Shown: positions 10,406 through 51,895 of the stretch, one piece after another
How the letters are laid out: every line of letters starts with the position of its first letter
Numbering within the stretch: the stretch's first letter is position 1
Sequence record: NC_049849.1
Reading direction: 5' to 3' (one strand)
DNA: 64,000 nucleotides
Made by a program: the position numbers and the translations under genes
The notes under the pieces: generated by a model
Database searches by the model: none
Told to the model about the DNA's origin: nothing
What the model saw: the letters and a program-made list of their open reading frames with translations, nothing else

Positions 10406-11395
10406 ATGTCGGACTATCTAGACCGGCAAGACAAGCTGGCATTCGTTCTCGACCAGATGCGTCAGTACTCAGGTGAAGCCAAGCGCCTGTCTGGCTCTAC
10501 GATGATTCTCTGTCCGTTCCATGCGGACGCCACGCCGAGCTGTCGTATCTTTCACGGCTCTGATACGAAGTACCCTGGAGCATTCAAATGCTATGGATGC
10601 CCCGAAGGTGGCGGCTGGAACAAGATCGCCGAGCACATCGGACTGCAGCCGTACAAGCCTGGCAAGCCTACGACGAAATATGCGTTGGGCATCAATCTCG
10701 CGCTAGAGGATGATGAGCCGATTGACGATGCGTACTTCACGACTGAGCTGCCGAAGGGTAAGAAGTGGCGGTCGATCCCCACTAACTTCCTACGCAAAGT
10801 CGGGTGCAAGTTCTATCACTCCGAGAAGTACAACACCAAGTACCTGTTCATGCCAGTCATCGTGAATGGCGAAATGAAAGGCTTTGTGCGCGGGCGTCTC
10901 CGCAAGGAAGAAGGCAAGCCGTCGTATCTGAACTCTAAGACTGCATGGACTGCGACCTACGGGTTCTTTCCGTTTGACTTCGCAATCAAACGCGCAAAGA
11001 AGTACAAGCGCATCGTCTTGGTCGAGGGGCAACGCGATGCTCTGCGGCTTCTCATGATGGGCATTCCGGCCGTGGCTATTCTCGGGTCGCAGTCGTGGAC
11101 AGAGTACAAGGCGCAGCTGCTCGAGCTCTATGGCATTGAAGAATGTGTGCTGCTATTCGACGGCGATCCTGCAGGCATCAAAGCAACGAAGACCGCACTA
11201 ACGTTTCTGAAGCCGCACTACAAGTGCACGGTCATCAAGCTGTGGAAGCTCGAAGGTTCTCCGTATCACGAGTACAAGCAAATCAAGTCGAAGAAAAAGC
11301 GCAAGGCTTTCAAGAGCAAGCTTTGGGACCCGGGCAATTGCCCTGAATGGATTTTAGATCGAATCAAGGAGAAGTACTTTGCTAGCTCTGCTTAA
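10406..11395 (+). CDS. dnaG: DNA primase (DnaG-like, CHC2 zinc finger + TOPRIM)
   Basis: CPFH...CYGC zinc finger; TOPRIM LVEGQRDAL and FDGDPAG; start refined to 10406. Confidence 0.88.
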   Translation: MSDYLDRQDKLAFVLDQMRQYSGEAKRLSGSTMILCPFHADATPSCRIFHGSDTKYPGAFKCYGCPEGGGWNKIAEHIGLQPYKPGKPTTKYALGINLALEDDEPIDDAYFTTELPKGKKWRSIPTNFLRKVGCKFYHSEKYNTKYLFMPVIVNGEMKGFVRGRLRKEEGKPSYLNSKTAWTATYGFFPFDFAIKRAKKYKRIVLVEGQRDALRLLMMGIPAVAILGSQSWTEYKAQLLELYGIEECVLLFDGDPAGIKATKTALTFLKPHYKCTVIKLWKLEGSPYHEYKQIKSKKKRKAFKSKLWDPGNCPEWILDRIKEKYFASSA

Positions 11396-14110: not shown

Positions 14111-14452
14111 ATGGCAGAAAACATCCTAGAGTATCTCTTTCAGACCAACATTGATGGCTTGCAGGAATCAGCGGGCTTTACGCTGAGGCAACAGGATGCT
14201 GATCTGTTGCGTCAGTTTTTCTTTATGGGCGCTTATAACGCAATCATGCTGCAGCGTACAGGGCTCAAAGGTCTGAACGCGGCAAAGCCCGACGAAGTAG
14301 CGTGCTACACGCAGAACCAAATGCTCGGTGAAATCTTTGACGTGATAGGTACTGAGGAAGGCATGGATGATGAGTACGAAGACGAAGAGCAAGACTCCGA
14401 CGAAGACGACGAAGAGCAAGAAGCCATTCCGCCAAACCGGAACCTACACTAA
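14111..14452 (+). CDS. hypothetical protein with acidic C-terminus
   Basis: Start refined to 14111, right after the upstream stop. Confidence 0.55.
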   Translation: MAENILEYLFQTNIDGLQESAGFTLRQQDADLLRQFFFMGAYNAIMLQRTGLKGLNAAKPDEVACYTQNQMLGEIFDVIGTEEGMDDEYEDEEQDSDEDDEEQEAIPPNRNLH

Positions 14453-14735
14453 GATCAAGCAGTCGTATCCGGCTACGTCGATCTGCAAGCGGTTGAAGTT
14501 CGGCGAGACTTCGATCAAAGGTATCAGGCCTGACGGGTCTGTTATCAAGATCAAGCTCAAGGACTTCATCATGGCTAAGCGCTCAGAGGACGGCGGCACT
14601 ATCATGGTGACGTATACGGTACGCTCGGATCAAGGCATGTATCTCGAGTTCGTTAAGCACATGAACGACGATATCAGCCAATACCGCCAGGGTACGACCT
14701 TGGTCTACATATCACGCAAGAGGGTAAAAGAATGA
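14367..14735 (+). CDS. hypothetical protein
   Basis: GAGGAAGG upstream; overlaps the previous gene by 86 nt, so the start is uncertain. Confidence 0.45.
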   Translation: MMSTKTKSKTPTKTTKSKKPFRQTGTYTKIKQSYPATSICKRLKFGETSIKGIRPDGSVIKIKLKDFIMAKRSEDGGTIMVTYTVRSDQGMYLEFVKHMNDDISQYRQGTTLVYISRKRVKE

Positions 14736-19317: not shown

Positions 19318-20735
19318 AAAACAAGAAACAAGTAGCGACTGTCGAGCATGTTGGCTACGACTTGATGCCCGCCGCTGTAGACTTCTTTGATACTTTTGAG
19401 AGTGTCGGAGTCAAGTACGGCAACAACAAGCAGAGCAAGTGGTGGACTCGCGATCTGCGCGATGGTGTCCATGTCTTCTATCTGCCGGATCGTACGCTCT
19501 ACCGTGGACGTGCCGGAGCGACTCAGTCGTGCATTGCCAGTGTTGAAGTCGATGAGTTCCTTGAGTACTCGTTGCTGAGCAATCCCGAGCTGTACTCTAG
19601 CTGGGGCCTGCGCTACGCAATGATTAGCCCGCCACATATGGGGTTCAAGCCGGCTCCGGTACGCAATCCGCATATCCGTTTGTTCGCGGACTCGGGTGGC
19701 TTCCAGATTCGCCAAGGCGTCACCGACTTCATTGATCCCAATACTCTGGTCGACTTCTACAACAAGACGACTGACATTGGTATCGGCCTTGACGTTCCTA
19801 TGCACCCGTTGCTGTATCCGAAGATGCTGCAGCGCATGGCGCATGTTACCTGCATGAACGGCGAGTACATCAAGAAGCAACTGAACCCTGGCGTCATGCT
19901 GTACGATCTGAACCACGGCATGGACTTGGTCGACCGCAAGGCTTTCCTCGACGTGACCGAAAAGTACGAGCCGCTCGATGGTATCTCGCTGGCTGGTACG
20001 TCGAGCAATGCGCGTGGTGAGTACGGCGTGTCTGCGCACATCGTTAACGGCGTGGTTGGTATCGCATATGTCCTGGCTCGTTCTGCCAAGCGTTATCGCA
20101 CGGCTCACATCCTGGGCACCACGACTCCGTTCTATATGTTCGTGTTCAACGTCATGACTCGCGGCAAGTTCTTTCCGCATATCACATCTGATAGTTCGAC
20201 GTACGCGCAAGCGGCAATCATGAATACGCACTTGATGGGCATCCCCGGCATCAACATGCTGCGACGGAATCCGATGCCGAAGACTGATCTGTCGACTCTG
20301 CCATGCAGCTGCCCTATCTGCCACATGACGAAGTACACGCAGTCGTACGTAATCAACAATCGGTCAAACATGATTCACAGCATCTGGTACTACGTTCAGA
20401 TGATGCGCTACACGGAGCACTTGGCTGACGAGTTCCTGGCAGGCCGTACCAAGGACTTGGAAATCCTGAAGGTGCTCGGACCCTCGACGTTTAGCCCTGT
20501 CCACATGAAGGGTACGATGCGATTCCTACGCGACCTGATCGAGCACGGCTACAACAAGGCTTATGCGAACAGCAAGGACTTCATTCACTCGATGCTGGGT
20601 AAGAAGACCACGACCAATCTCTTTGGTGGCGAGCGTTCGGCTGGAGTCTTACACGGTGATGCCGAACGTACGGACCGCATTCTCACCAGCTACGAAACGT
20701 ACCATAAGAAGACCGGAGTGAAGAAGCGCAAATGA
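19314..20735 (+). CDS. TGT/DpdA-family guanine transglycosylase
   Basis: ADSGGFQ, LDVP, HILG, SDSSTY (nucleophilic Asp), zinc site CSCPIC...H; lies inside the Que cluster. Confidence 0.8.
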   Translation: MKNKKQVATVEHVGYDLMPAAVDFFDTFESVGVKYGNNKQSKWWTRDLRDGVHVFYLPDRTLYRGRAGATQSCIASVEVDEFLEYSLLSNPELYSSWGLRYAMISPPHMGFKPAPVRNPHIRLFADSGGFQIRQGVTDFIDPNTLVDFYNKTTDIGIGLDVPMHPLLYPKMLQRMAHVTCMNGEYIKKQLNPGVMLYDLNHGMDLVDRKAFLDVTEKYEPLDGISLAGTSSNARGEYGVSAHIVNGVVGIAYVLARSAKRYRTAHILGTTTPFYMFVFNVMTRGKFFPHITSDSSTYAQAAIMNTHLMGIPGINMLRRNPMPKTDLSTLPCSCPICHMTKYTQSYVINNRSNMIHSIWYYVQMMRYTEHLADEFLAGRTKDLEILKVLGPSTFSPVHMKGTMRFLRDLIEHGYNKAYANSKDFIHSMLGKKTTTNLFGGERSAGVLHGDAERTDRILTSYETYHKKTGVKKRK

Positions 20736-21337
20736 AAGTAGAAATCAAAACGTTTGAAAACGTGTGGGGCTGCGCTGTATTCAACGCCGAGCTGCATCGG
20801 AAGATGAAGCATCATCATTTGGTGGTCGGCGTCGATACGCTATTCAGTTCCAAATACAAGCCGGTCAAAGGCAAGACCACAATCGTCATCGACAACTTTG
20901 CACGTCTGCGCAGTAGCGGCGTTCCTATCATCGGGTACGAAAAGTCTCCGACGCAGACCTGGGTGAAAGTTAAAGCTAGCTGGAAGAAGCCGAAGCCCAA
21001 CAAGCCCGAGATTAAGAAGCCGGTGTATCTGGCAGGCGAACTCAAGGTGCTGCTCCCTACGGTTCCGCTGATGCTCGAGTATCAAGCCGCCGTGACCTTG
21101 GAGCAGATGGAAGCTCTGGCCGAGAAGTACAGAGCTGAAATCGACAAGCCTAAGAAAGGCTCACACAAGTGGTTGCGTCGTTCGGTCAACAGCACGCTCA
21201 AGGTCCTGGCGCCTGAGAAGTATGACCCCAAGTTTAAAGAGAAGGCCGCAGCTGCTCCTAAGTCCAAGCTTGGTGCCAAGGCGAAGAAAGCGAAAGACGT
21301 AAATACAGAAGTCGCTAAGAGGAAGGGCAAGAAATGA
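20732..21337 (+). CDS. hypothetical Lys-rich protein within the Que cluster
   Basis: Coupled ATGA overlaps on both sides. Confidence 0.6.
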   Translation: MKVEIKTFENVWGCAVFNAELHRKMKHHHLVVGVDTLFSSKYKPVKGKTTIVIDNFARLRSSGVPIIGYEKSPTQTWVKVKASWKKPKPNKPEIKKPVYLAGELKVLLPTVPLMLEYQAAVTLEQMEALAEKYRAEIDKPKKGSHKWLRRSVNSTLKVLAPEKYDPKFKEKAAAAPKSKLGAKAKKAKDVNTEVAKRKGKK

Positions 21338-24290: not shown

Positions 24291-25253
24291 ATGGCTAAGT
24301 ATCAGCACTCCGAAACATTCAGGGCACTGAAGTCTACCAAGGAAGAAATCGAAGGCAATCTCACCAGTGCACAGTATCTACAGACGCTGGACTACTTTCT
24401 GTGGAGTGCGCTGAATCCCATCGCGGCGGAGTGTCCTGATTTCTTCTACTCGATGATCGCCAAGTTCGTGAGTCTGCAAACGACGAAACCGAATACGAAG
24501 TTCACGAGTGGGGACAAGAAGCAGCTGCCGCTCATCTTGTTCAATGCCTTGATAAACAAGAACGCAGAGAAGCGATTCGAGTCTATTAAAAAGATGTATT
24601 GGAATCGCGGGCTACTCTTTGGTCTGATCCTGACCTTTCAGAAGCTGACCAACGAGTACCAAGCTCTGCACTCAGTCTTCAACGATGTTGACTTGACCAC
24701 TCGAGTCAATCGTATGCGTCAGATTGAGAAATCAGTCGGCGCGAAGAACCCAGCGTATCTCTACGCAACGATTCAGCAAGTGGCCTACTGGGACTCGAAG
24801 GCTCGCTGGTTCAAGTCGTTGATCGTACAGAAGTTCACGCGTATGGCGATGCTGCAAGCACAGCAGACCTACAAGGACTTCGACCACAAGGTTCCGCTGG
24901 ATGATGTATCACACGTCTACATGATGGTAGTCAACAAAGCCATTGATCGCTGTAACTCCAACATGGGAGTGATCACGACCTTTGTTCAGAATTGGTTGCC
25001 TACGGCTCGAGCAATCGTGCAGCAGATGGCATCCAAGTCTACCGATGAGTCATGGGACGAGCTGGCAGAAACCCTGGGTGACAGTTTAGAGCTCGGTGCT
25101 ACAATGCCGAACACTGACTCTGAAACCCTGCAGCAAATCTCTTACCTCGCACGACTGGCCGATCCACAAGGCTTGGTGCGTACCCACTTGCAAATCCCTC
25201 AATGGGTAGCGGCCAAATACCGCGCCCGCCTTCTCAATCTTGCTAAAGAGTAA
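24291..25253 (+). CDS. divergent sigma70-family factor (RpoD-like non-conserved region + region 2, no region 4)
   Basis: RMRQIEKSVG...KARWFKSLIVQKFTRMAMLQA...LDDV...NKAIDR...MGVITTFVQNWL aligns by eye with RpoD KLQQIEEETG...KARRAKKEMVEANLRLVISIA...LDLI...MKAVDKF...GYKFSTYATWWI. Confidence 0.6.
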   Translation: MAKYQHSETFRALKSTKEEIEGNLTSAQYLQTLDYFLWSALNPIAAECPDFFYSMIAKFVSLQTTKPNTKFTSGDKKQLPLILFNALINKNAEKRFESIKKMYWNRGLLFGLILTFQKLTNEYQALHSVFNDVDLTTRVNRMRQIEKSVGAKNPAYLYATIQQVAYWDSKARWFKSLIVQKFTRMAMLQAQQTYKDFDHKVPLDDVSHVYMMVVNKAIDRCNSNMGVITTFVQNWLPTARAIVQQMASKSTDESWDELAETLGDSLELGATMPNTDSETLQQISYLARLADPQGLVRTHLQIPQWVAAKYRARLLNLAKE

Positions 25254-26269: not shown

Positions 26270-27784
26270 ATGGCAAAGCAGAAAGGTACTGACCTCGACG
26301 GTTACAAGTCGGGCCGCAGCAATGACGACCGCAAGCGTCCTGAAGATATCGTTGACGTACTGAAGGTACCCGACAACGGTGACAAGTGGACCACGGTTCG
26401 TATGATTGGCATCCTCGCCACGTACGCTGGCTACTGGGTCACGACGACGAAGAAGGACGGCAAGGAAGGCACGTTCTACACGCCCAGCCCTTCGTACGAT
26501 CCCGAGTCGCAAGAGTTCGACCGTTCCAAGTATGACCCGTGGCTCGACGCAGCGGATCGTTTGAACACGCAAGATCGCCGAGTCATCAGCCCGCGCCGTG
26601 TGGCATACTCGAACGTCATTGTGCGCGCTGAGCAAAAGAAGGCGCCGAAGAAGAAGCCGAAGCCGACCAAGGCCGAGTTGAAGTCGGGCTTCAAGGATAA
26701 GGAATCGGAAACCTGGACGCCGGTCCGCGTTATGGCGTTCCCTTCGTCGTTGATGAACAAGATCATCAAGTTCAAGAACGCCAACATGGTCGAGACCAAG
26801 AAAGGCGAGAAGGGCTACCATGTCAACGATCCGAAGTACGGCTGCGATATCCGTATCTCCTACGACTCGAAGGCTTCCGGTACTGACAAGTACTCGGTGT
26901 TGATGGCTGATCGCAAGCCCATCACCGAAGAAGAATCCGAATACCTGCTGTACGATATCTCCGAACTGCAAACGGTGCCGGACGAAGCAGAGGTGAAGCG
27001 CGACTTCGAATCGTGGGCCAAGCGTAACGGCATCAAGCTCGGCAAGAACAAGTCGAAGGATGATGACGACGAAGAAGACGATATCGACGAGGACGAAGAC
27101 GACCTCGATGATGACGACGAGCCGAAGTCGAAAAAGAAGGGCAAGGGCAAGGGCAAGGCCGACAAGAAGTCGAAGGGCAAGAAGAAGTCCAAGTCTGATG
27201 ACGACGAAGACGAAGACGAGGATGAAGATGACCTCGACGACGAAGACGACGAAGACGAGGATGACGACGAACCCAAGTCGAAAAAGAAGGGTAAAGGCAA
27301 GCCCGCCAAGTCCAAGAAGTCGAAGGATGATGATGATGACGACGAAGACGAGGATGAAGATGAAGATGAAGATGACGACGATGATTCGGATGACGATGAT
27401 GAGGATGACTCTGACTCGGATGATGAAGACGATGACGACGATGACTCGGATGATGACGAGGACGATGATGAAGATGAGGATGACGACGACGAGCCCAAGT
27501 CGAAGAAGTCCAAGTCTAAGTCGAAAGGTAAACCCGCCAAGGGTAAGAAGAAGTCCAAGTCTGATGATGATGACGAAGACGATGATGACCTAGACGACGA
27601 TGACTCCGATGATGAGGACGAAGACGACGACGAAGATGAGGACGATGAGCCCAAGTCGAAGAAGTCGAAGAAAGCCAAGTCGAAGAGTAAGGAAAAGTCC
27701 AGCAAGAAGGGCAAGAAGTCGAAGGGTAAGAAGAAGTCCAAGTCGGATGATGACGAAGACGAAGACGACGACATTCCTTTCTAA
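26270..27784 (+). CDS. single-stranded DNA-binding protein (T4 gp32-like core) with long charge-block tail ending DDDIPF
   Basis: Core motifs TTVRMIG, YSNVIVR, VMAFPSSLMNKI, NDPKYGCDI resemble gp32; the C-terminal DDDIPF is identical to the bacterial SSB tip; gene lies upstream of recA. Confidence 0.7.
   Translation: MAKQKGTDLDGYKSGRSNDDRKRPEDIVDVLKVPDNGDKWTTVRMIGILATYAGYWVTTTKKDGKEGTFYTPSPSYDPESQEFDRSKYDPWLDAADRLNTQDRRVISPRRVAYSNVIVRAEQKKAPKKKPKPTKAELKSGFKDKESETWTPVRVMAFPSSLMNKIIKFKNANMVETKKGEKGYHVNDPKYGCDIRISYDSKASGTDKYSVLMADRKPITEEESEYLLYDISELQTVPDEAEVKRDFESWAKRNGIKLGKNKSKDDDDEEDDIDEDEDDLDDDDEPKSKKKGKGKGKADKKSKGKKKSKSDDDEDEDEDEDDLDDEDDEDEDDDEPKSKKKGKGKPAKSKKSKDDDDDDEDEDEDEDEDDDDDSDDDDEDDSDSDDEDDDDDDSDDDEDDDEDEDDDDEPKSKKSKSKSKGKPAKGKKKSKSDDDDEDDDDLDDDDSDDEDEDDDEDEDDEPKSKKSKKAKSKSKEKSSKKGKKSKGKKKSKSDDDEDEDDDIPF
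27050..27781 (+). repeat. intragenic low-complexity repeat: alternating Asp/Glu and EPKSKK-led Lys blocks
   Basis: Four GA(G/A)CC(C/G)AAGTCGAA(A/G)AAG units separated by GAY/GAR runs. Confidence 0.85.
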
Positions 27785-42641: not shown

Positions 42642-42887
42642 ATGAACGAACTTAATCTGGTTCAGAAGCGCATCGCCAAAGTCATCGCTGACTATGCCGG
42701 CATCGCCGAAGAGCACATTTCGGCTGATGCAGACTTCGAAGCGTTTGATCTTGATAGCCTTGATGAGGTCGAAATCATCATGGAAGTCGAAGATGAGTTC
42801 ATGATTGAAATTCCCGACGACGAGCTGAGCAACGTTCGCACGATTGCGCAGCTGGCCGATATTGTTTCTGCAAAGGAATATTCGTAA
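42642..42887 (+). CDS. acpP: acyl carrier protein
   Basis: Acidic 81 aa; DLDSLDEVEIIMEVEDEFMIEIPD with the phosphopantetheine Ser. Confidence 0.9.
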   Translation: MNELNLVQKRIAKVIADYAGIAEEHISADADFEAFDLDSLDEVEIIMEVEDEFMIEIPDDELSNVRTIAQLADIVSAKEYS

Positions 42888-43190
42888 ATGGAAAGAATGC
42901 CGGAGCTCTCCGAGAACGCAGCACTCCTGATCGCTAGTTTAGAGGCTTCGGTGCTGTATCGTGCCAGTATCGCGGATGCACAAAGTTTCGATGGCACCCG
43001 CGCTACTGATTTCGTAAATAAAGACAGACGGGCTTTGATAAAGTACGTTGCGGCTCTCGAAACCCAAGCAGCGAAGCAGGCAAATCCTGATGCGCAGATT
43101 GCGAAGATGAAAGAGCAACTCAAGAAGCTGCGTAAGAAAAACAAAGAGCTACGTGCAGTAGCACCCGGACGTTCATACATTCTCAAATAG
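42888..43190 (+). CDS. hypothetical coiled-coil protein
   Basis: TAAATG coupling. Confidence 0.5.
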   Translation: MERMPELSENAALLIASLEASVLYRASIADAQSFDGTRATDFVNKDRRALIKYVAALETQAAKQANPDAQIAKMKEQLKKLRKKNKELRAVAPGRSYILK

Positions 43191-43204
43191 GACTTACCCT
43201 ACCC

Positions 43205-44011
43205 ATGAAGAAAGCAAAGAAAGACCCCGGCGCTCTGCTGAAGAAAAAGAAGAAGGCAGCCGCCGAAGTCGAAACCACGACCAAGAAAAAGAAGGTCGAT
43301 GGCAAGGCCGACAAGGCAGTGAAGATCAAGAAGTCGGTTGATGACGCCAAGAAGCTGAAGAAGGCCGAGAAGGTTACCAAGGGTAATCCTGAAGGCAAGA
43401 AGAGCAAGGCCGACAAGGGATTGACTCCTCTGCAAAAGGCGCAGCTGGCGAAGAAGAATGGTACGGCCAAGCCGAAGGCCAAGCGCAAGCCGTTGCCTAC
43501 GTGGAAGGCTCCCTCTGATCTGAAGCGCTACGCATTCGAGATTCGCTTCACGACCGAGAAGGACGGCATGCCTGGTTCGACCATCAAGGTCACGCGCTAT
43601 CAAGGCAAGATCGAAGCAGACAAGGACCCGCGTAAGATGTGGGACCTGGCGACCTACGATCCGCAAACGGTCATCGGTATCGCAGCACGTCTGTCTCTGA
43701 CGCTGTTCCATGCAACGGGCAAGCCTTCGAGCAAGGGCGTTCCGTCGCGTCTGCAAGGCAAGACTGAGTACATCTTGCACGGCGCCGTCGGCCCGACCAA
43801 GGAAGGCAAGATCAAGGCTGCAATCGCCAAGGTCTTCGTCGAGCAAGCGAACAAAAAGGGTAAGGTCGTTCTGGTCGAACTCGACAAGAAAGATTACCAG
43901 ACCAAAAAGATTCGCAAGGTCAACAAGTACTTTGCGGGTGCATTCGCCAACGTGATCGCCGAAGCTCCGAAGCATGAGCGCAAGCGTCGCAAGGAAGCGG
44001 ACGACGAATAA
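43205..44011 (+). CDS. hypothetical protein with Lys-rich N-terminal third
   Basis: 268 aa, strong codon bias. Confidence 0.7.
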   Translation: MKKAKKDPGALLKKKKKAAAEVETTTKKKKVDGKADKAVKIKKSVDDAKKLKKAEKVTKGNPEGKKSKADKGLTPLQKAQLAKKNGTAKPKAKRKPLPTWKAPSDLKRYAFEIRFTTEKDGMPGSTIKVTRYQGKIEADKDPRKMWDLATYDPQTVIGIAARLSLTLFHATGKPSSKGVPSRLQGKTEYILHGAVGPTKEGKIKAAIAKVFVEQANKKGKVVLVELDKKDYQTKKIRKVNKYFAGAFANVIAEAPKHERKRRKEADDE

Positions 44012-44340
44012 TGCTCAGCAGCGTTCAAATCCTCTACCTGATTACGGGGCACACCGTCATCGCCAAGGTTAGCGAAGCCTACAAGACTTCTGCTATCCTC
44101 GGCGGCGACAAGCAGGTTGATCCTGACAGCATCACGCTGGAACGTCCTGTGCAAGTCACTCTGGTTCCGCATCAAGGTCAAACGATCCCGATGCCGCAGC
44201 CCTTCGGTGGTCTGTTGACCGCAGCGACGGCACGCGAAGAGTTCCAGATTTTGCGGTCTCATGTGGTTGTGTCTGTTGATGCACCCAAGGAAGTCGAAGA
44301 CCTGCATATGGAGTGGACTTCGAAAATCGCTATGCGGTAA
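44011..44340 (+). CDS. hypothetical, possible Sm/LSm-like beta-barrel
   Basis: ILYLITGHTVIAKV...ITLERPV...ILRSHVV pattern. Confidence 0.45.
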   Translation: MLSSVQILYLITGHTVIAKVSEAYKTSAILGGDKQVDPDSITLERPVQVTLVPHQGQTIPMPQPFGGLLTAATAREEFQILRSHVVVSVDAPKEVEDLHMEWTSKIAMR

Positions 44341-44356
44341 TTCCTGAAATCCAAAA

Positions 44357-44445
44357 TCGTAAATAGTAGGGTAAGCAGGGAAGTCTGCAGTCTTCCCTGT
44401 AGTACAGAATAAGTTTGCGAGTTCTGAATTCAGAAATCGTAAATA
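44357..44445 (+). promoter_or_regulatory. tandem TCGTAAATA motifs with a hairpin and a 14-bp palindrome
   Basis: Motifs at 44357 and 44437; CAGGGAAG/CTTCCCTG hairpin 44376-44399; TTCTGAATTCAGAA 44422-44435. Confidence 0.65.
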
Positions 44446-44515
44446 CATGGACAAGCGATGACCGTGAGCTTTGAATCGGTCGCATCATCCCAAACCTATA
44501 GGACAGAAACACATC

Positions 44516-45403
44516 ATGGCAAAGAACGCAAAGGCAGCAGGCAAGAAGGCGGCTGGTAAGAAGGCCGCTGGCAAGAAGCAAGTCGAGAAGAAGGTCACGA
44601 AGGCTGCTGGCAAGAAGGGCCCGGCCCCCAAGAAGCAAGCTGCGAAGAAGACGGTTGCCAAGAAGACCGTAGCCAAGAAGACGGCAGCGAAGACCCCGAA
44701 GGCTGCCAAGGCTCCACGTGGTGCGAAGGGTGGCAAGCAAGCTGTGGCAGCGTCGCAAGTTCAAGTCAACAACGGCATGCTGATGGTTCAGGTCGTCAAG
44801 AGCATCGTTGGCGACAAGATCAAGGTCACGGCCGAGTACTTCGAAGTCGACGGCGTGAAGATTCCGCGCGCTCTGGTCATCGCAGTTGCCGGCAAGGAAG
44901 TGATCTATCGCGCTTCGATCAACCTGGGCACGATTCAAGACGCCAAGACGATCAAGGGCAATCTGGTCTACACGACTGAACTGGGTCAGGTCATGATTCT
45001 GGATTCGTCGGTCGCTTCCATCGTGATCGGCAACGGTGCAGCCGCCGGTGGTGAAGCCGAAGTCGAAGAGTCGGACAGCGAAGAGTCGGATACCGAAGAC
45101 GGTGACGACGAGTCGGACAGCGACGATGAAGACGAAGCTGATTCGGATGATGAAGATTCGGACGAAGACGACGAAGACTCGGATGACGAGGACTCCGACG
45201 AAGACGACGAAGATTCTGATGATGAAGATTCGGACGAAGACTCCGATGACGAGGACGACGAAGACTCGGACGAGGATGATGAGGATTCCGACGACGAAGA
45301 CGAAGACTCCGACGACGAAGACTCGGATGATGAAGACGACGAAGACGACGAAGATTCGGACGATGACGAAGAAGACTTCGACGACGAAGATGACGACGAG
45401 TAA
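44516..45403 (+). CDS. polyampholyte protein: histone-like K/A N-terminus, small beta core, ~100-aa Asp/Glu/Ser tail
   Basis: AKAAGKKAAGKK..., then DSDDEDSDEDDE repeats; start refined to 44516. Confidence 0.8.
   Translation: MAKNAKAAGKKAAGKKAAGKKQVEKKVTKAAGKKGPAPKKQAAKKTVAKKTVAKKTAAKTPKAAKAPRGAKGGKQAVAASQVQVNNGMLMVQVVKSIVGDKIKVTAEYFEVDGVKIPRALVIAVAGKEVIYRASINLGTIQDAKTIKGNLVYTTELGQVMILDSSVASIVIGNGAAAGGEAEVEESDSEESDTEDGDDESDSDDEDEADSDDEDSDEDDEDSDDEDSDEDDEDSDDEDSDEDSDDEDDEDSDEDDEDSDDEDEDSDDEDSDDEDDEDDEDSDDDEEDFDDEDDDE
45060..45400 (+). repeat. intragenic acidic tandem repeats (DSDDE/DSDEDDE)
   Basis: Recurrent GA(T/C)TC(G/C)GA(T/C)GA(T/C)GAA units. Confidence 0.85.
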
Positions 45404-45413
45404 GCAGTAAGGT

Positions 45414-45447
45414 AAAAGGTTGACGGGTTAAAATCCGTCAACCTTTT
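45414..45447 (+). terminator. rho-independent terminator (bidirectional-looking)
   Basis: AAAAGGTTGACGG / CCGTCAACCTTTT perfect 13-bp stem. Confidence 0.8.
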
Positions 45448-45463
45448 CGTCATTGAGGAAACT

Positions 45464-45754
45464 ATGGATTCCGAAAAAGACCATTTGGCGTTGTACAGTC
45501 ACGACTGCTTGTCGTGCGGGCACCTGGTTCAAGGCGCGCCGACCAAGCACACGAAGTGCCACGCTACCAAGGGTAACAAGCTCTGTCCTGCCAACGACGT
45601 GGTGATAGTCATTACCGGCAAGATCGACCAGTTGGTTGCCAAACTCAAGAAGGCGCGTAAAGCAAAAGACGCGCAGGCAGAAGCCAAGCTGTGGTCCAAG
45701 GTTGTCAAGGAACCGGCCGCAGTACAGCAGCGTATCTACGACCTGCTGGCATAA
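45464..45754 (+). CDS. small Cys-rich protein
   Basis: CLSC...C...C; GAGG RBS. Confidence 0.6.
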   Translation: MDSEKDHLALYSHDCLSCGHLVQGAPTKHTKCHATKGNKLCPANDVVIVITGKIDQLVAKLKKARKAKDAQAEAKLWSKVVKEPAAVQQRIYDLLA

Positions 45755-45766
45755 CAGGAGCGTTAA

Positions 45767-46441
45767 TTGGAAAAAGCAGATATCGGACTTATCAAGTATC
45801 GGCAGTGGTTGATCCCGGCTGGTGGCAAGTCCTATCAGAAGCTGGTTGACCTTGGCTTCCCGATTACTCGGATTCACGAAGACAGCCAAGAGCTTCTGAG
45901 CTACGCCCTAAAGAAAAAGGGTATGACCGCAAAGGTCACGAAGTTTCAAAAGGTCCTGTCCAAGTTTCAGGACGAAGTGTGCGAATGGTGGATGAGTCGT
46001 GATCCTGAACGCCGCGAGTGCCGGTTCGAAAAGAAGGCCTGGGTGTTCAAGACCACGAAGAAAAGCGCGAGCGTCAAAGGCTTGAAGGACGCAGAGCGCC
46101 TGAAAAGCAAGCTCGAAGACTTTCTGCGACGCTGGGGTTTCATCGCAACAGCAACGGTATCCGAAGCGCACGGTCTGGTGAAGGTGCAATGCGCTATCGC
46201 ATTCTCCGAGAAGCCTCCGGTCATCACGGTCAAGGACACGCCGAACGAAGCGCCGCGCAAAATCCTGCAATTCGGATTCACGCGGTTTGTGTCGTGGACG
46301 ATTCACGGCAAGTTCCATTGGCGGTTGGAAACGCAGACTGGAACCGAGTGGGTGTTCTTGAAAGAGGGCAGCTGCCTGGTCACCGAAGTGTGCGATCCTA
46401 CCGAGCATCTTAAGTCTCTCATGGAGGTCTTCAATGTCTAA
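45767..46441 (+). CDS. hypothetical protein
   Basis: AGGAG RBS, TTG start. Confidence 0.55.
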   Translation: MEKADIGLIKYRQWLIPAGGKSYQKLVDLGFPITRIHEDSQELLSYALKKKGMTAKVTKFQKVLSKFQDEVCEWWMSRDPERRECRFEKKAWVFKTTKKSASVKGLKDAERLKSKLEDFLRRWGFIATATVSEAHGLVKVQCAIAFSEKPPVITVKDTPNEAPRKILQFGFTRFVSWTIHGKFHWRLETQTGTEWVFLKEGSCLVTEVCDPTEHLKSLMEVFNV

Positions 46442-46643
46442 CGAAGCGAAGCCTGACGAAGACGTGCCCGGCAAGGGTTGGATGTGCTACGAGTCGCCGG
46501 AGATTGTGGGCATCGTTCACTCCAAGCTTTCCGGTACAGGCAAGACTGAGGTGTCTGTCTACAATCGGAACACTGGCGAAACGCGATACGTTGAACATGG
46601 CAGCGCCGAGTGGCACGAGAAAATGCGCGCCTTGGGCGGCTAA
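46434..46643 (+). CDS. hypothetical protein
   Basis: GGAGG RBS. Confidence 0.55.
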   Translation: MSNEAKPDEDVPGKGWMCYESPEIVGIVHSKLSGTGKTEVSVYNRNTGETRYVEHGSAEWHEKMRALGG

Positions 46644-46659
46644 CTAACGAAGGAATCTA

Positions 46660-48678
46660 ATGGCAAGGAAATCAGCCAAGCAAGAGGGCTTCGTCATTGC
46701 AGAGGGGTTGGATGGTATCCGTCTCAATCCCGCAATGTACCTCGGGGCACGCGGCCCTCATATGGTGCATCGCTGCATCAAAGAAGCCTTCGATAACTCC
46801 TACGACGAGCACGTAGCAGGTCGCAATGACACCATTGAGGTTGTCATGGACTTGGACCGCAATCTGTACGCGGTGGCCGATAAAGCGGGCGGCATCCCGA
46901 CCGACTACAAGAAGTTGCAGGACGGTACGAAAGAAACGATCATGACGGCTGCGTTCACGCGAGCGCACGCCGGTGGCAAGTTCAACGACAAGTCGTACAA
47001 GACTTCGGCAGGCACCCACGGCGTGGGCGTTGCAGCAGTCAATGCGGTGTGTGAGAAGATGGTCGTTTTCTCGAACTACAATGACAAGCTGGTCCGTCAG
47101 GAGTTCTCTAAGGGCAAGATCATCGGCAAGAAAGACCCGGTCGGTGTGAAGGCGATTGACAAGGACTTCCAAGGCTTGCTGTTGGAGAAGACTTCGAAGT
47201 ACGGCACCATCGTTTTCTTCGTGCCCGATCAAGAAATCGTTTCGGTCGATGCAGCGCGTGGCAAAGAGCTGCCGAAGAAGTACGAGAAGGCTGTGGCTGA
47301 GCCTGCATGGATTGGCAACTGGCTGCGCAACATTGCTGACCTGTACCCCGGATTGATTATCAAGTATTCGATCATGAAGAAGGGTCAGCGCAAGGACTTC
47401 ACCTTCCTGAACAAGAAAGGTATCGAAGTCATCCCGCGCAAGATGGCAGAGAAGAATGAGTTGGGTCTGATGGCGAAGCCGATGACTCACAAGTCGGACT
47501 TCATCACGTTGTCGATTCAGTGGTCCGATCATACTGATACCGATATGTTCCTGTCGTTTGTGAACGCAAGCCCGACCATCGAGCACGGCACACATATGCA
47601 AGGCTTGCGTGACGCGATGTTCCAGGCGGTCAAGCCGTTCGCGCCGACACCGAAGAAGAATCAGAAGGGTTCGGGGTTCTCGGGCAACGATCTGCTGATT
47701 GGTCTGCTCGGTATGTTTGAATGGCGTATGCACGGTGCCACGTACACGTCGCAGATTAAGGACAAGCTGGACTCCAAGGTCGACCGCGAAGTCTACAATG
47801 AACTCCTGCCGGTCTTCGAAGCCTACTTCAAGAAAAACCCTGGCGTCCCGAAGACGTTGGTCAAGCGAGCACTTGTCGTAAATAAAGGACGTGAAGAGCT
47901 GGCACGTACGGTCAAGCAGTTGGCTGATGTGAAGAAGACGCAGCGCGGTTCGGTGCTCCCGCCCAGCTTGGCTGTTGCAGAGAAGGCGGACCCGCGTCGG
48001 CGTGAGCTGTTCATTGTTGAAGGCGACTCGGCAGCGAAGACTGCGATTGATGCACGGAACTCTGACTACCAAGAGGTGTTGGCAGCAGGCGGTAAGCCTC
48101 TGAACGTGCTGAAGGCTACGCTCCCGCAAATCCTGAAGCATGAAGGCATTCAAGAGCTCATCATTTCGCTGGGCGCTGATATGAAGACCTTCAACCCGAA
48201 GGACGAGAAGCCGCAGATTTCGAGCGAGGGGTTGCGTGCCGCGCACATCATTCTGCTGGTCGATCCGGACCCCGACGGTGGACACATTGCAGTTCTCTAT
48301 CTCGCAGCGATCTATCGTTTGCTGCCAGGTCTGTTGAAGCAGGGGCGTGTGTGGTGCGTCGATGCTCCTCTGTTCGCGGGGCTGAAAGACGGCACCGTCT
48401 ACGGCGCACCAACGCTGGATGACTGCGTCAAGAAGCTGCCGAAGGGCATGACTGCAAAGGACGTGGTCCGCATCAAGGGCTGGGGTGAAGTCGATGAGAA
48501 CTGGCTGGAGCCTCTGGCGTTCGATCCAAAGAAGCGCCGACTGATCCAGATTAATCCGTTTGCTGACGCCGAGAAGGAAAAGTATTTCCGCAACATCGTT
48601 GCAGAAGATGCCAGCTACCGCCGACAACTCCTAGGTTTGGGTGACGATGATGCTCAAGAAGAAAGTCAAGAAAGTTAA
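46660..48678 (+). CDS. gyrB: type IIA topoisomerase subunit B (GyrB/ParE-like)
   Basis: EAFDNSYDE, DKAGGIP, HAGGKF, GTHGVG, ELFIVEGDSA, GGKPLN, DPDPDGGHI. Confidence 0.93.
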   Translation: MARKSAKQEGFVIAEGLDGIRLNPAMYLGARGPHMVHRCIKEAFDNSYDEHVAGRNDTIEVVMDLDRNLYAVADKAGGIPTDYKKLQDGTKETIMTAAFTRAHAGGKFNDKSYKTSAGTHGVGVAAVNAVCEKMVVFSNYNDKLVRQEFSKGKIIGKKDPVGVKAIDKDFQGLLLEKTSKYGTIVFFVPDQEIVSVDAARGKELPKKYEKAVAEPAWIGNWLRNIADLYPGLIIKYSIMKKGQRKDFTFLNKKGIEVIPRKMAEKNELGLMAKPMTHKSDFITLSIQWSDHTDTDMFLSFVNASPTIEHGTHMQGLRDAMFQAVKPFAPTPKKNQKGSGFSGNDLLIGLLGMFEWRMHGATYTSQIKDKLDSKVDREVYNELLPVFEAYFKKNPGVPKTLVKRALVVNKGREELARTVKQLADVKKTQRGSVLPPSLAVAEKADPRRRELFIVEGDSAAKTAIDARNSDYQEVLAAGGKPLNVLKATLPQILKHEGIQELIISLGADMKTFNPKDEKPQISSEGLRAAHIILLVDPDPDGGHIAVLYLAAIYRLLPGLLKQGRVWCVDAPLFAGLKDGTVYGAPTLDDCVKKLPKGMTAKDVVRIKGWGEVDENWLEPLAFDPKKRRLIQINPFADAEKEKYFRNIVAEDASYRRQLLGLGDDDAQEESQES

Positions 48679-50263
48679 GAAGGCCACCGGCCTACGGATG
48701 AGCGCAGTAGATGCGACTGAGGTTACAGTCAACGTTGACAAGATGCTCGCGGCCAACGTCGATAAGATCGCGGCTGATGAGTTCGCAGCACGTGCACTTC
48801 GGACTTACGGTTCGTACGTGGTCGAGGATCGCGCAATCCCTGACTACCGCGATGGGTTGAAGCCCAGTCACCGTGCGATCATTTGGGCGTTGGACGGCAT
48901 CAACCTGCGTCCGAATGCCAAGCACAAGAAGTCGGCACGGGCCGTCGGCGATGCAATGGGCAAGTTCCATCCGCACGGCGACTCTGGTCTATATACCGCA
49001 ATGGAAACGCTGGTCAATACGATCCCGCCATCCATTGACGGTCAAGGCAACTGGGGCACGCCGATCAACATGGCGGCAGCGCAGCGGTACACCGAGGCCA
49101 AGATGAGCAAGTTCACTCACTTGTTCCTGTTGGACAAAGAGTACCTGCAAGTCGTGCCGAAGGTTCAGAACTATTCGGGTGATGAAGTCTGGCCGGTCTA
49201 TCTGCCTGCGTTGCTTCCCTACATTCTGTTCAACGGGGGCACTCCGCCTCCCGCGTATGGCGTGAAGGCAGGCAATCCGTCGTTCAGTTTCGACTCGGTG
49301 TCGAAGATCGTTACCGCAATGCTGCGTGGCGAGAAGTACGACGCCAAGCGACTGTCGAAGGAACTGCAGCTGTTCCACAACTTCGGATGCGAGCCGGTCA
49401 TCACGAAGGATGAGTACTTGCAGTTCATGGCGACTGGCAAGGGTTCAGTGAAGTATCGTGGCGTCGTGAACACTGATCCGAAAAAGAAGATCATTCACAT
49501 CACGACGTTTGTACCGAACGGGTTTGCATCGACCAACGGCATTGAGAAAGCGCTGAACAACATTGCCGAACTGAAGGGCGTCAAGCGTGCGTTCTCCAAG
49601 CAAGGTAAGAAGTCGCCAGGCTCTGGTCCGTACGGCGCGCTGTACGTGATTGAATGTCAGAAGTCGATCAAGGACTCCGAGTTTCAAAAGATCGTCGAGA
49701 AGGTCAAGCAGCAAGTCACCAACTCGGTGCCGTATCGACTGGGCGTGACGGTTCGTTCCAAGACTGAAGAAACCGAATTCAAGTATCTGAACTTCGTGCA
49801 GTTCTTCCAGGCATGGGTGAACTATCGAGTGAAGCTTGAGGTGCGGCTCATCAAGCACTTGATCGCCAAGGTGGAGCGTGAGCTCTACATCAATCGCGTG
49901 TATCTCTACGCGGTTGAGCACATGAAGGAAATTCTTGCGGCGTTGCCCAAGGTGTTGGTCAAGGATGATCCGAACACTGCACTGAGCAAGGCACTCAAGA
50001 TTCCGCTCGAAGATGCGACCATCATCCTCGACCGAAAGGTACGACAACTCGCAAAGCTGGAAGCCGCGGCGCTGAAGGCAAAGATCAAGGAGCTAGAGAC
50101 CGAACTCAAGACCCTAAAGACTGACTTGAAGAAGCCCGGAGAACGCGCAGCACGCGATACAGAGCAGCGCGTGGCGTCGTATCTGAAGGCACCGGACTCC
50201 ACGAACTCGGGTATCCCGGTTGTTGTAAAAACGCAACAAACGAAGAAAATCAAGAAATCGTAA
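48641..50263 (+). CDS. gyrA: type IIA topoisomerase subunit A (GyrA/ParC-like, no C-terminal pinwheel)
   Basis: RAIPDYRDGLKP, KKSARAVG, HPHGD, catalytic AAQRYTE; the start may be 48647 or 48650. Confidence 0.92.
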   Translation: MTMMLKKKVKKVKKATGLRMSAVDATEVTVNVDKMLAANVDKIAADEFAARALRTYGSYVVEDRAIPDYRDGLKPSHRAIIWALDGINLRPNAKHKKSARAVGDAMGKFHPHGDSGLYTAMETLVNTIPPSIDGQGNWGTPINMAAAQRYTEAKMSKFTHLFLLDKEYLQVVPKVQNYSGDEVWPVYLPALLPYILFNGGTPPPAYGVKAGNPSFSFDSVSKIVTAMLRGEKYDAKRLSKELQLFHNFGCEPVITKDEYLQFMATGKGSVKYRGVVNTDPKKKIIHITTFVPNGFASTNGIEKALNNIAELKGVKRAFSKQGKKSPGSGPYGALYVIECQKSIKDSEFQKIVEKVKQQVTNSVPYRLGVTVRSKTEETEFKYLNFVQFFQAWVNYRVKLEVRLIKHLIAKVERELYINRVYLYAVEHMKEILAALPKVLVKDDPNTALSKALKIPLEDATIILDRKVRQLAKLEAAALKAKIKELETELKTLKTDLKKPGERAARDTEQRVASYLKAPDSTNSGIPVVVKTQQTKKIKKS

Positions 50264-50273
50264 ATCGTAAATA
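50258..50273 (+). promoter_or_regulatory. overlapping double TCGTAAAT(A) motif upstream of the histone-like gene
   Basis: TCGTAAATCGTAAATA at the gyrA stop. Confidence 0.6.
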
Positions 50274-50402
50274 TCCTGTATAATCGTCATGCGCAGTTTG
50301 CGACATTTTGAAACGCAAATTCCGCATGGCACAATTTCATTTCGTTCAATCGAACGAATCTATCCCGCGAATCATTCGCACCTTCCCTCTAGGAAAAATA
50401 AA

Positions 50403-50864
50403 ATGTCGAACATCGTTAAGCAAGTCGCCGAAGTCACGAAAGCTGCCAAGGCTCTGGAAAAGCAACTGAAGGCCGCTACCAAGCGCGCCGACAAGGCTGA
50501 GAAGACTGTCGAGAAGCTGGAAGCAAAGCTCGAAGGCAAGAGCGGCAAGGCTGCGAAGAAGACCAAGGCCGAAAAGCCCGCGAAGGCTGCCAAGGTCAAG
50601 AAGGAAAAGGCCGAGAAGCCCGCCAAGGCCAAGAAGGAAAAGGCTGGCAAGGCTGAGAAGGTTGCCAAGAAGGAAAAGGTCGCCAAGGTCAAGAAGGCTG
50701 ACAAGGCCGCGAAGCCTGCGAAGGGTGACAAGAAGGCCAAGGCTGACAAGGCCGGTAAGGCTGAGAAGGCGAACAAGAAGGCCGACAAGGCAGCCAAGGC
50801 TGGCAAGAAGGAAAAGAAGTCCAAGAAGAACGATGATGACGACTCGTTCACGCTGGGCAACTAA
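50403..50864 (+). CDS. histone H1-like Lys/Ala-rich protein with N-terminal coiled coil
   Basis: Repeated EKPAKA/KAGKAEK units; AGGAAAA RBS; start refined. Confidence 0.75.
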   Translation: MSNIVKQVAEVTKAAKALEKQLKAATKRADKAEKTVEKLEAKLEGKSGKAAKKTKAEKPAKAAKVKKEKAEKPAKAKKEKAGKAEKVAKKEKVAKVKKADKAAKPAKGDKKAKADKAGKAEKANKKADKAAKAGKKEKKSKKNDDDDSFTLGN

Positions 50865-50870
50865 GTAAAC

Positions 50871-50904
50871 AAGGGGTGGAGGCGATAGAGTCTCCACCCT
50901 TTTT
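50871..50904 (+). terminator. rho-independent terminator
   Basis: GGGTGGAG / CTCCACCC stem plus TTTTT. Confidence 0.75.
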
Positions 50905-50926
50905 GTCATTTAACGAGGACGCGCCA

Positions 50927-51895
50927 ATGAGCAAACGTGAAATTTCCAACTTTGACAAACTCCAAGCGAAGCAGGGTCTTGCTGCTAAGAACCTTTCGCA
51001 GATGAGCAAGATTTCTGACTACGGCACGAGCACCGAGACCGAAGACAAGTTCCTGGCTGCTAATCGTACGAAGGCAGAAGCCACGTTGACCAAGCTGCGC
51101 AAGACCCGCGCATTCGTTCAGGCAACTCTTACCAAGGTATCGACATTGCCTCTGCTGGAAAGCAAGCATGAGCGCATGATCGTCCTGTCCGGCGTTCACA
51201 AGAAACTGGAAGCCGCACGAGCACAACCGCTACCCACTTCGGTGCGTGGCAAGTTCAATATGTTCTGCAATGAAGTCGCGAGTTTGAAGGACGGTGTGTT
51301 TTCGGAAATCGTGGACAAGCGCGAAATGACAGTACTCGGTGGAACCGAACTGCTGGCTACCATCGACAACTCGATCAGCCGGCAAGAAGCGCGCCTGCAA
51401 CAAGCCGATGTGACTGCCGCGTCTGAGCATGACACCGAGAAGGCGTACCAACGAGCCGCAGAAATCATCAACAACAATCGCAAGGAAGCAGATCGTCTTG
51501 ATTCGATCAAGAACCGTGAGTTCGTCGTGGCTCGTGCGCCCATCGTTGCGATGACTCAAACCCCGCTGTCGGTTGCAAAGCTGAAGCACGCAGGCATTGC
51601 GGCTGAGGACGTTTCGGGATATCCGATGGTTCGCAACCAGTTGGTCCTGGGTATCAACAAGGAAGCGCTGGAAAGCCCGACCTCGAAGCGCAAGATGAAA
51701 CCCGAAGACGCTGCAGCCGAACTGCTGAAGTCGATCAGCGCTTCCATGAATGAGAAGGTTCAGTTCGTCACCGAGAAGCCGTACCCGTACAAAGGTGCGC
51801 TGTGGTACTGGATCGGAACCACGTACGAAATCAATGCACTGATGAAGGCTGCCGGCGGACGCTTGGTGATGAATCGCTGGGGCTTTGCATTCTAA
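50927..51895 (+). CDS. hypothetical protein
   Basis: GAGG RBS; 322 aa; start refined. Confidence 0.65.
   Translation: MSKREISNFDKLQAKQGLAAKNLSQMSKISDYGTSTETEDKFLAANRTKAEATLTKLRKTRAFVQATLTKVSTLPLLESKHERMIVLSGVHKKLEAARAQPLPTSVRGKFNMFCNEVASLKDGVFSEIVDKREMTVLGGTELLATIDNSISRQEARLQQADVTAASEHDTEKAYQRAAEIINNNRKEADRLDSIKNREFVVARAPIVAMTQTPLSVAKLKHAGIAAEDVSGYPMVRNQLVLGINKEALESPTSKRKMKPEDAAAELLKSISASMNEKVQFVTEKPYPYKGALWYWIGTTYEINALMKAAGGRLVMNRWGFAF

Follow-up and report, generated by a model that had tools for sequence, protein, structure and literature searches.

The stretch of DNA analyzed here (the window) is 64,000 nucleotides of sequence record NC_049849.1 and corresponds to bases 1-64000 of Achromobacter phage Motura, a jumbo phage of 221,431 bp in the genus Moturavirus; positions 43000-51000 are 100% identical to MN094788.1, with coordinates unchanged. 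Three genes of this region, all on the + strand, encode strongly charged proteins, each recorded as "hypothetical protein" in the Motura record: gp43205 (QDH83469; 43205..44011) and gp44516 (QDH83471; 44516..45403) lie shortly 5', and gp50403 (QDH83477; 50403..50864) shortly 3', of the genes for two subunits of a phage type II topoisomerase (topo II). Judged by sequence, this suite is real and is conserved across a phage lineage. Its interpretation as a phage chromatin or condensate system, as put forward in a first-pass annotation of the same DNA, is conjecture.

How large shell-less phages keep a genome of more than 200 kb organized, replicated and protected in the cell is largely unknown, and the clade described below offers a compact, conserved and easily recognized gene set tied to a topoisomerase. 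If the proteins coat or buffer DNA, they would provide a simple bacterial-virus model of the polycation/polyanion interplay that governs eukaryotic chromatin; even otherwise, two folds without a solved relative and two promoter-like motif classes are defined for poorly studied phages. New beyond the first reading are the conserved cassette, the polyampholyte family with its beta core, and the division of promoter-like motifs into a non-structural (TCGTAAATA) and a structural (AATTTCAT(A)) class.

Three charged proteins and their families

Composition was ranked among the 96 annotated coding sequences (CDSs) of the window, for which the mean lysine fraction is 0.078 (standard deviation (sd) 0.048) and the mean fraction of aspartate plus glutamate is 0.133 (sd 0.049). 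By lysine content gp50403 ranks first and gp43205 second, and gp44516 shares the top rank in acidic residues with the SSB (single-stranded DNA-binding protein). The translations of the three open reading frames (ORFs) and their composition agree with what the first-pass annotation had described. The arms of gp44516 and gp43205 are predicted to be disordered, with AlphaFold2 confidence (pLDDT) mostly at 35-57.

gp44516 (295 aa) is a tripartite polyampholyte. A K/A-rich arm (44516-44755; residues 1-80, with 26 K and 24 A) carries a net charge of +26, an all-beta core (~44756-45040; residues 81-175) is close to neutral at +1, and a D/E/S tail (45041-45400; residues 176-295, with 61 D, 32 E and 17 S) reaches -93, which leaves the whole chain at -66. 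The union of a basic arm and an acidic tail in one chain, as first noticed, is thus borne out by the charges of the two segments. When modeled by AlphaFold2 with the family alignment, the core has nine strands and a pLDDT above 90 over residues 85-172, and the arms are at about 44-57.

The middle part of gp44516 was searched against 1.84 billion representative proteins at E<=1e-3, which gave 22 matches. Four of these are giant repetitive bacterial proteins with Ig-like, FIVAR and similar repeat domains and were dismissed as spurious; the other 18 are small proteins. The family alignment comprises the Motura protein and 17 of the 18, and the last one (P0030, 187 aa), seemingly cut short and without the acidic tail, stands outside it. 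The relatives follow a common plan of basic arm, ~85-residue core and acidic tail. The tail occurs in every aligned member, spans 45-145 residues of almost pure D/E and has a net charge of -27 to -93; it ends in an acidic-hydrophobic tip in 16 of the 17 retrieved relatives, and the C-terminus of the Motura protein itself is acidic, with Phe at -8. An N-terminal arm of 38-101 residues is found in 16 of 18 family members, two of which are weakly basic (+2 and +7). The two near-armless members have repeated K-rich modules within the tail instead, and in one further relative the apparent absence of an arm is due to a mis-called start codon. As aligned, the family keeps its beta core, its acidic tail and its tip constant, and the basic arm is the variable part. 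All full-length members are net negative, so that gp44516 would be unable to condense DNA alone.

Searches against solved structures gave no match for the core by sequence (PDB, E<=10), and the best Foldseek match to the PDB had E 0.24 for a full-length model, whose disordered arms may lower sensitivity. As modeled, the core is a fold with no relative among solved structures in these sequence and fold searches. The homologue in phiRSL1 (L002) is annotated as two ORFs in different frames, ORF328 and ORF329, with the basic arm on one and the core and acidic tail on the other; this split is evidently one frameshift or sequencing error. Weak structural matches to the core in the BFVD database were seen in phages PaBG and Alexandra, and tblastn at E<=10 found no homologue there. 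A profile relation between the gp44516 and gp43205 families was looked for, and none was found. The literature searches turned up no protein of this kind, tripartite and acid-tailed, with a new beta core and a fixed place beside a phage topoisomerase.

gp43205 (268 aa; 23% K) opens with the K-rich arm that the first-pass annotation had recognized, residues 1-100 having a net charge of +26. The disordered arm (1-70) is followed by a conserved short helix (75-84) and a basic alpha/beta domain (~100-250), the latter with an AlphaFold2 pLDDT of 85-93, and the C end is first basic and then acidic (RKRRKEADDE), a pattern that is conserved. Eight relatives were found in a 5.8-billion-protein collection, and the basic arm varies among them. 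The family profile had no match to PDB sequences at E<=10. Foldseek matches of the full-length model to MHC-like and RNA ligase platforms (TM 0.2-0.38, rmsd ~9 A) were judged to be chance. By model and profile, the alpha/beta domain is also without a solved relative in fold or sequence.

gp50403 (153 aa) is H1-like in composition, with 35% K, 23% A and a net charge of +31, of which +29 falls in a K/A/E low-complexity region at residues 46-140. This region is built of imperfect repeats (TRF periods 9-45 bases); it had been described as KPAKA repeats, and its K/A-rich low complexity is as described, but the exact KPAKA occurs just twice. Residues 1-45 form a conserved segment that is probably helical, and the chain ends in an acidic-aromatic C-tip (DDDDSFTLGN). 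Three features recur in the orthologues: the segment at the N-terminus, the region rich in K and A, and a C-terminal tip in which F/Y and aliphatic residues come after acidic ones. The sole family match is to phrog_38087 (function unknown), and searches of Pfam and NCBIfam gave none.

In a comparison of Motura with its closest relative (L008), the gp44516 core is 91% identical and the gp50403 C-tip ~91%, whereas the gp44516 arm and tail are 62-68% identical with many indels. Taken together, the arms are 62-74% identical and indel-rich but retain their composition. Divergence of the arms with composition kept, next to a core and C-tip at ~91%, fits selection on charge over sequence.

Charged extensions are also present on other proteins of the window, where residue composition agrees with the earlier description in each case. 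RecA is K-rich over residues 1-55 and then has an acidic patch; gp4524, whose gene adjoins that of the DnaB-like helicase, has a K-rich N arm; the topo II A subunit, described earlier as GyrA, is K-rich at both termini; and the ORF at 20732-21337 in the Que cluster has a K-rich C end. The SSB (26270-27784) has a linker of ~250 residues that is a block polyampholyte, in which acidic runs alternate with K/S/G-rich blocks. Its last six residues are those of the E. coli SSB-Ct peptide, and the annotated protein has no Pfam match. In SSB proteins the acidic tip with its terminal Phe is read by basic pockets of partner proteins (PMC10164576), and the Motura SSB, with its E. coli-type tip, may recruit host SSB partners.

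A conserved topoisomerase cassette and its promoter-like motifs

The gp43205 profile was used to search viral contigs, and in the loci fetched every ORF was scored against a profile for each gene of the cassette. Thirteen distinct phage or metagenome loci, from Moturavirus, Mieseafarmvirus, Sarumanvirus, BCSR5 and metagenomic contigs (30-230 kb), keep one gene order: gp43205-like, polyampholyte, Zn-ribbon, gp45767-like, topo II B and topo II A. The polyampholyte was detected in 12 of the 13 and the Zn-ribbon gene in 11. Orthologues of gp50403 occur in seven of the 13 syntenic loci, where, within the fetched parts, the H1-like gene and a gp50876-like gene form a pair 3' of topo II A. The topo II neighborhoods of PaBG and Lu11 share the topoisomerase but not the cassette.

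In the window the motif TCGTAAATA has 16 copies (0.15 expected), every one on the + strand, and across 213 kb of the Motura genome 27 copies are forward and 2 reverse. Over the same 213 kb, 33 of 36 forward TAAATA hexamers sit inside CGTAAATA. The motif is restricted to the two non-structural arms of the genome and lies 30-160 nt 5' of the SSB gene, tRNA-Arg and several other genes. It is very similar to the ACTGTAAATA-like sites that the Lu11 record labels "putative middle/late promoter". A distinct short motif, AATTTCAT(A), goes with the structural arm: of ten copies in the 213 kb, eight are placed 20-60 nt 5' of a gene there in the correct orientation, for example at 116600, 123747, 154535, 177785, 189615 and 193504 of the Motura record on the minus strand. 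It was also found 5' of one BcepSauron gene. Just two copies in the 213 kb are on the + strand, and one of these is within the leader of the H1-like gene.

The first-pass annotation had described doubled motifs before both the polyampholyte and the H1-like gene. For gp44516 this is correct as to number, with full copies of TCGTAAATA at 44357..44365 and 44437..44445 (both + strand), the first followed by a 9-bp hairpin at ~44375-44400 and the second placed 71 nt 5' of the start codon. A GTAAATA core is found at the position equivalent to the second copy in the closest relative, BCSR5, BcepSauron and the relative L016. The equivalent of the first copy in the closest relative stands 11 nt 5' of a tRNA-Leu(TAA) and drives that gene, so that the doubling would not be two promoters for one gene and the second copy alone would belong to gp44516. 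The copy at 44437 is likely the gp44516 promoter. The interval between the two Motura copies (44366-44436) has no tRNA, only the hairpin. A tRNA-Leu(TAA) in this slot of the closest relative (11090-11174), against a hairpin in Motura, suggests that a phage tRNA was lost or gained.

Before gp50403 the doubling does not hold in the same form: one full copy of TCGTAAATA (50265-50273, within 50255..50273; + strand) overlaps a 7-base partial duplicate. It is followed by a structured 5' leader (50274..50402, + strand) with a predicted fold of -37.4 kcal/mol (z -6.0), which includes AATTTCAT at 50333-50340. The leader is partly conserved in the closest relative, where AATTTCAT is retained, and it matches no Rfam family; it could serve to control translation or stability. 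GTAAATA-core motifs precede both the polyampholyte and the H1-like genes in five relatives. Because TCGTAAATA and AATTTCAT both precede the gene in Motura, gp50403 may be transcribed along with the replication genes as well as late.

Strong terminators had also been claimed for the two genes, and both are confirmed on the + strand. An intrinsic terminator with a perfect 15-bp stem and a T-rich run follows gp44516 at 45414..45455 (-24.6 kcal/mol, z -5.8), and one with a 13-bp stem and a T run follows gp50403 at 50871..50902 (-24.1 kcal/mol, z -5.5). Hairpins equivalent to the former are present in the closest relative, BCSR5, BcepSauron and L016. The unit of motif, single gene and hairpin recurs in the closest relative, BCSR5, BcepSauron and a 116-kb metagenomic contig. 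This layout fits strong, independent expression of gp44516 and gp50403.

A scan for sigma-70-type promoters gave sites no more frequent than in shuffled sequence, and a pattern search for the T4 late-promoter octamer gave no match. Motura is one of the group 2 jumbo phages, which encode sigma factors and a gp33 orthologue but lack an RNA polymerase (PMC7824862); this makes two phage-specific promoter classes plausible. One product of the window (24291-25253) is annotated "DNA-directed RNA polymerase subunit alpha"; it has no Pfam match at E<=0.01, and the name looks unsupported. Of the genes of a phage nucleus system (chimallin shell, PhuZ, phage multisubunit RNA polymerase) the first-pass annotation had seen none, and no search aimed at them was made.

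Relation to known proteins and interpretation

The proteins had been called histone-like, and this likeness turns out to be compositional only: no H1, Hc1, Hc2 or Burkholderiales H1-like model reaches its cut-off. Linker histones H1/H5 consist of a winged-helix domain with K-rich tails, whereas gp50403 is without a folded domain of that size, and none of gp50403, gp44516 and gp43205 has a linker-histone Pfam domain at E<=0.1. The bacterial Hc1/Hc2 and NF038053 proteins resemble gp50403 and the gp44516 arm in their K/A-rich imperfect repeats and strong positive charge, and gp50403 is expected to act as the bacterial H1-like proteins do, by non-specific electrostatic binding of DNA. The gp44516 N arm scores 21.3 bits against PF07382 (HC2; cut-off 40), 15.8 bits against NF038052 (cut-off 135) and 15.5 bits against NF038053, the Burkholderiales H1-like equivalog (cut-off 80), each below threshold; gp50403 matches none of PF07432, PF07382, NF038052 and NF038053. 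The conserved N-terminal segment and acidic-aromatic C-tip of gp50403 are, as scored, not features of the Hc1/Hc2/NF038053 families. Among phages, the moraphages have H1-like proteins (PF07432), which the authors of a study on them suggested might aid genome compaction for packaging (PMC12619734). These and gp50403 are all basic H1-like proteins of large phages, but gp50403 matches no Pfam family, and neither a topo II linkage nor an acidic partner is described for the moraphage proteins (PMC12619734).

The acidic side of the suite has different parallels. E. coli SSB-Ct is a disordered linker with an acidic-hydrophobic tip, and the same kind of ending is found in 16 of the 17 gp44516 relatives, in further loci and in the H1-like orthologues. 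The tails of the gp44516 family are far longer than the SSB tip, and the Phe of Motura gp44516 is at -8 within an acidic end. In the folded parts, the gp44516 core and the N domain of the Motura SSB have an hhalign probability of 0.2%, and OB-fold proteins are absent from the Foldseek matches of the gp44516 model (nine-strand core, with the disordered arms included in the model). The eukaryotic HMGB1, nucleoplasmin/NPM1 and prothymosin-alpha with H1 combine acidic tracts and basic regions, and the logic proposed for them and for gp44516 is alike, an acidic tract competing with DNA for basic partners. gp44516 is also built like these proteins, joining a small folded module to a long acidic tract and to a segment that is basic, but the order of domains differs, no homology was found and Pfam gave no match. 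No HMG-box or nucleoplasmin fold was among its best 50 PDB structural matches (all E >0.2), and when it is compared with nucleoplasmin/NPM the acidic tracts are present but the eight-stranded beta-sandwich structure of the pentamer core is not matched.

Our preferred reading, to which we give a probability of roughly 45%, is that the three gene products are accessory proteins of a replication, recombination and topology module, which work inside the cell in association with nucleic acids, act mainly by charge and are probably not virion parts. Genomic position, synteny and promoter class argue for a link of these genes to replication and topology rather than to the virion; in particular, location in the replication arm together with the non-structural motif argues against a purely virion-internal role. 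DNA binding, an interaction of tail with arms and any role with the topoisomerase are what we infer beyond these features. gp50403 would be a non-specific polycationic DNA coat or charge neutralizer, an analogue rather than a homologue of bacterial H1-like proteins, expressed together with the replication genes and, probably, late as well. gp44516 would present a neutral beta core, possibly an oligomerization or docking module, bearing a polyanionic tail and an acidic-hydrophobic tip. The tail may serve as a DNA-like competitor or chaperone for polycationic surfaces, with, as candidate partners, the H1-like protein, the lysine-rich arms present on RecA, topo II A and gp43205, and the linker of the SSB with its basic blocks; the basic arm may be a DNA tether or may fold back onto the tail. 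Such a logic would parallel that of the acidic tails of SSB-type and of HMGB- and nucleoplasmin-type proteins. gp43205 would bind DNA or RNA as a basic protein of a new fold.

Several observations weigh against this reading. No DNA-binding fold was recognized, and both cores are without a PDB match, although the use of full-length models in Foldseek possibly reduced sensitivity. The H1-like gene also has the structural-gene motif AATTTCAT, which makes a late or packaged role possible. In six of the 13 loci the part that was fetched does not contain the pair of H1-like and gp50876-like genes, so what looks like one suite may consist of two modules that can be separated, and synteny with topo II could mean common timing rather than common function.

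Three other explanations were weighed. In the first, the gp44516 tail is a DNA-mimic decoy that strips or blocks host H1-like nucleoid proteins or defense nucleases, or regulates the topoisomerase, and the phage H1-like protein replaces the host ones. The acidic tail is universal and every full-length member of the gp44516 family is net negative, as a decoy would have it, and the gp44516 gene is tightly linked to topo II and the Zn-ribbon gene. A suitable host family also exists, since NCBIfam has an equivalog for a Burkholderiales H1-like DNA-binding protein, and the isolated hosts of the clade (Achromobacter, Burkholderia and Ralstonia; the metagenomic relatives are not covered) are all Burkholderiales. 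However, Pfam, PHROG and PDB sequence and fold searches gave no similarity to known DNA-mimic proteins, the tail is predicted to be disordered rather than a rigid mimic, and gp44516 belongs to the expression class of the replication genes, not of the earliest genes. We consider such a decoy unlikely.

In the second, gp50403 and perhaps gp43205 are internal proteins of the virion that neutralize DNA in the head or are injected, and gp44516 is an acidic scaffold or chaperone. This agrees with the AATTTCAT motif at 50333 before the H1-like gene, its retention in the closest relative, and the role in compaction for packaging proposed for the moraphage H1-like proteins (PMC12619734). It also agrees with an investment in polycations, as genes for homospermidine synthase and glutathionylspermidine synthase lie outside the window, at 74267-77092 of the Motura record (PMC9992855); these genes fit a general investment in DNA charge management. 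However, all three charged-protein genes are in the replication arm, ~60 kb from the head genes and beside topo II in 13 loci, and their principal upstream motif is of the non-structural class. The H1-like genes of BCSR5 and BcepSauron have the GTAAATA-type motif alone, and gp44516, at net -66, would be an odd cargo alongside DNA. Packaging of these proteins appears improbable to us.

The third explanation is the one proposed in the first-pass annotation, in which block-charged gp44516, gp50403, gp43205, SSB and RecA coacervate with DNA into a shell-less replication compartment. Charge is indeed segregated within chains (+26/+1/-93 in gp44516, alternating blocks in the SSB), several replication proteins have similar arms, and E. 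coli SSB undergoes phase separation by way of linker and tip (PMC7584906). A phage RNA polymerase is missing from the clade, phiRSL1 failing to grow in rifampicin (PMC5468394), and so is any affiliation with the nucleus-shell lineage, the clade being distant from the nucleus-forming phages (preprint 10.64898/2026.10.21.760668). The words histone, condensate and phase separation are absent from a 2026 jumbo phage review, which suggests that the idea is unexplored rather than rejected. Nonetheless, the argument is purely one from composition, and many charged disordered proteins form no compartment; within the gp44516 family the basic arm differs in both length and charge, two members having almost none, and six of the 13 loci show no H1-like gene in the part that was fetched. 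We regard a condensate of this kind as doubtful. Its fullest form is a long shot: that a nucleus-less jumbo phage clade organizes its replicating DNA as a condensate-like body by means of an H1-like coat, an acid-tailed counter-protein of new beta fold and charge-block extensions on SSB, RecA and topoisomerase, which would be the phage equivalent of chromatin with its chaperone.

Neighboring genes and minor observations

The remaining genes of the cassette are all on the + strand. Between the gp43205 and polyampholyte genes is a small ORF of 109 aa (44011..44340) with a weak match to phrog_527 (function unknown), which is kept in the closest relative. The polyampholyte gene is followed by one for a 96-aa Cys/His-rich protein (45464..45754), a putative Zn-ribbon that is conserved in the cassette and has no Pfam family above cut-off, and then, directly 5' of topo II, by a gp45767-family protein of unknown function (45767..46441) without a match in Pfam, PHROG or NCBIfam. 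The Cys/His-rich (~100 aa) and gp45767-like (~225-270 aa) proteins, encoded between the polyampholyte and topo II, may be topoisomerase accessory factors. The topoisomerase itself is recognized from the annotation and from the Pfam families of its orthologues, with the large subunit at 46660-48678 and the A subunit at 48647-50263. The gp50876-family protein (50927..51895) is the constant 3' partner of the H1-like gene. Its start is more likely the ATG at 50927, which fits the orthologues better, because the annotated GTG at 50876 falls within the terminator hairpin at 50871-50902.

Two candidates that arose around gp44516 were rejected. A 121-aa Motura protein suggested by BFVD as a paralogue is assumed to be identical to the ORF at 14370-14735, for which the hhalign probability is 0.2%, and an Rfam search over the acidic-tail repeats returned only PrrB/RsmZ below threshold (22.4 bits vs 44), which was taken as chance. 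At 14111-14735 there are overlapping ORFs in different frames, of which the first ends acidic and the second begins basic, so that one frameshifted gene or an annotation artefact is possible. Just 5' of the cassette, a small acidic protein is encoded at 42642-42887; the orthologue in a relative has a PP-binding (acyl-carrier) Pfam domain, which is unusual beside replication genes.

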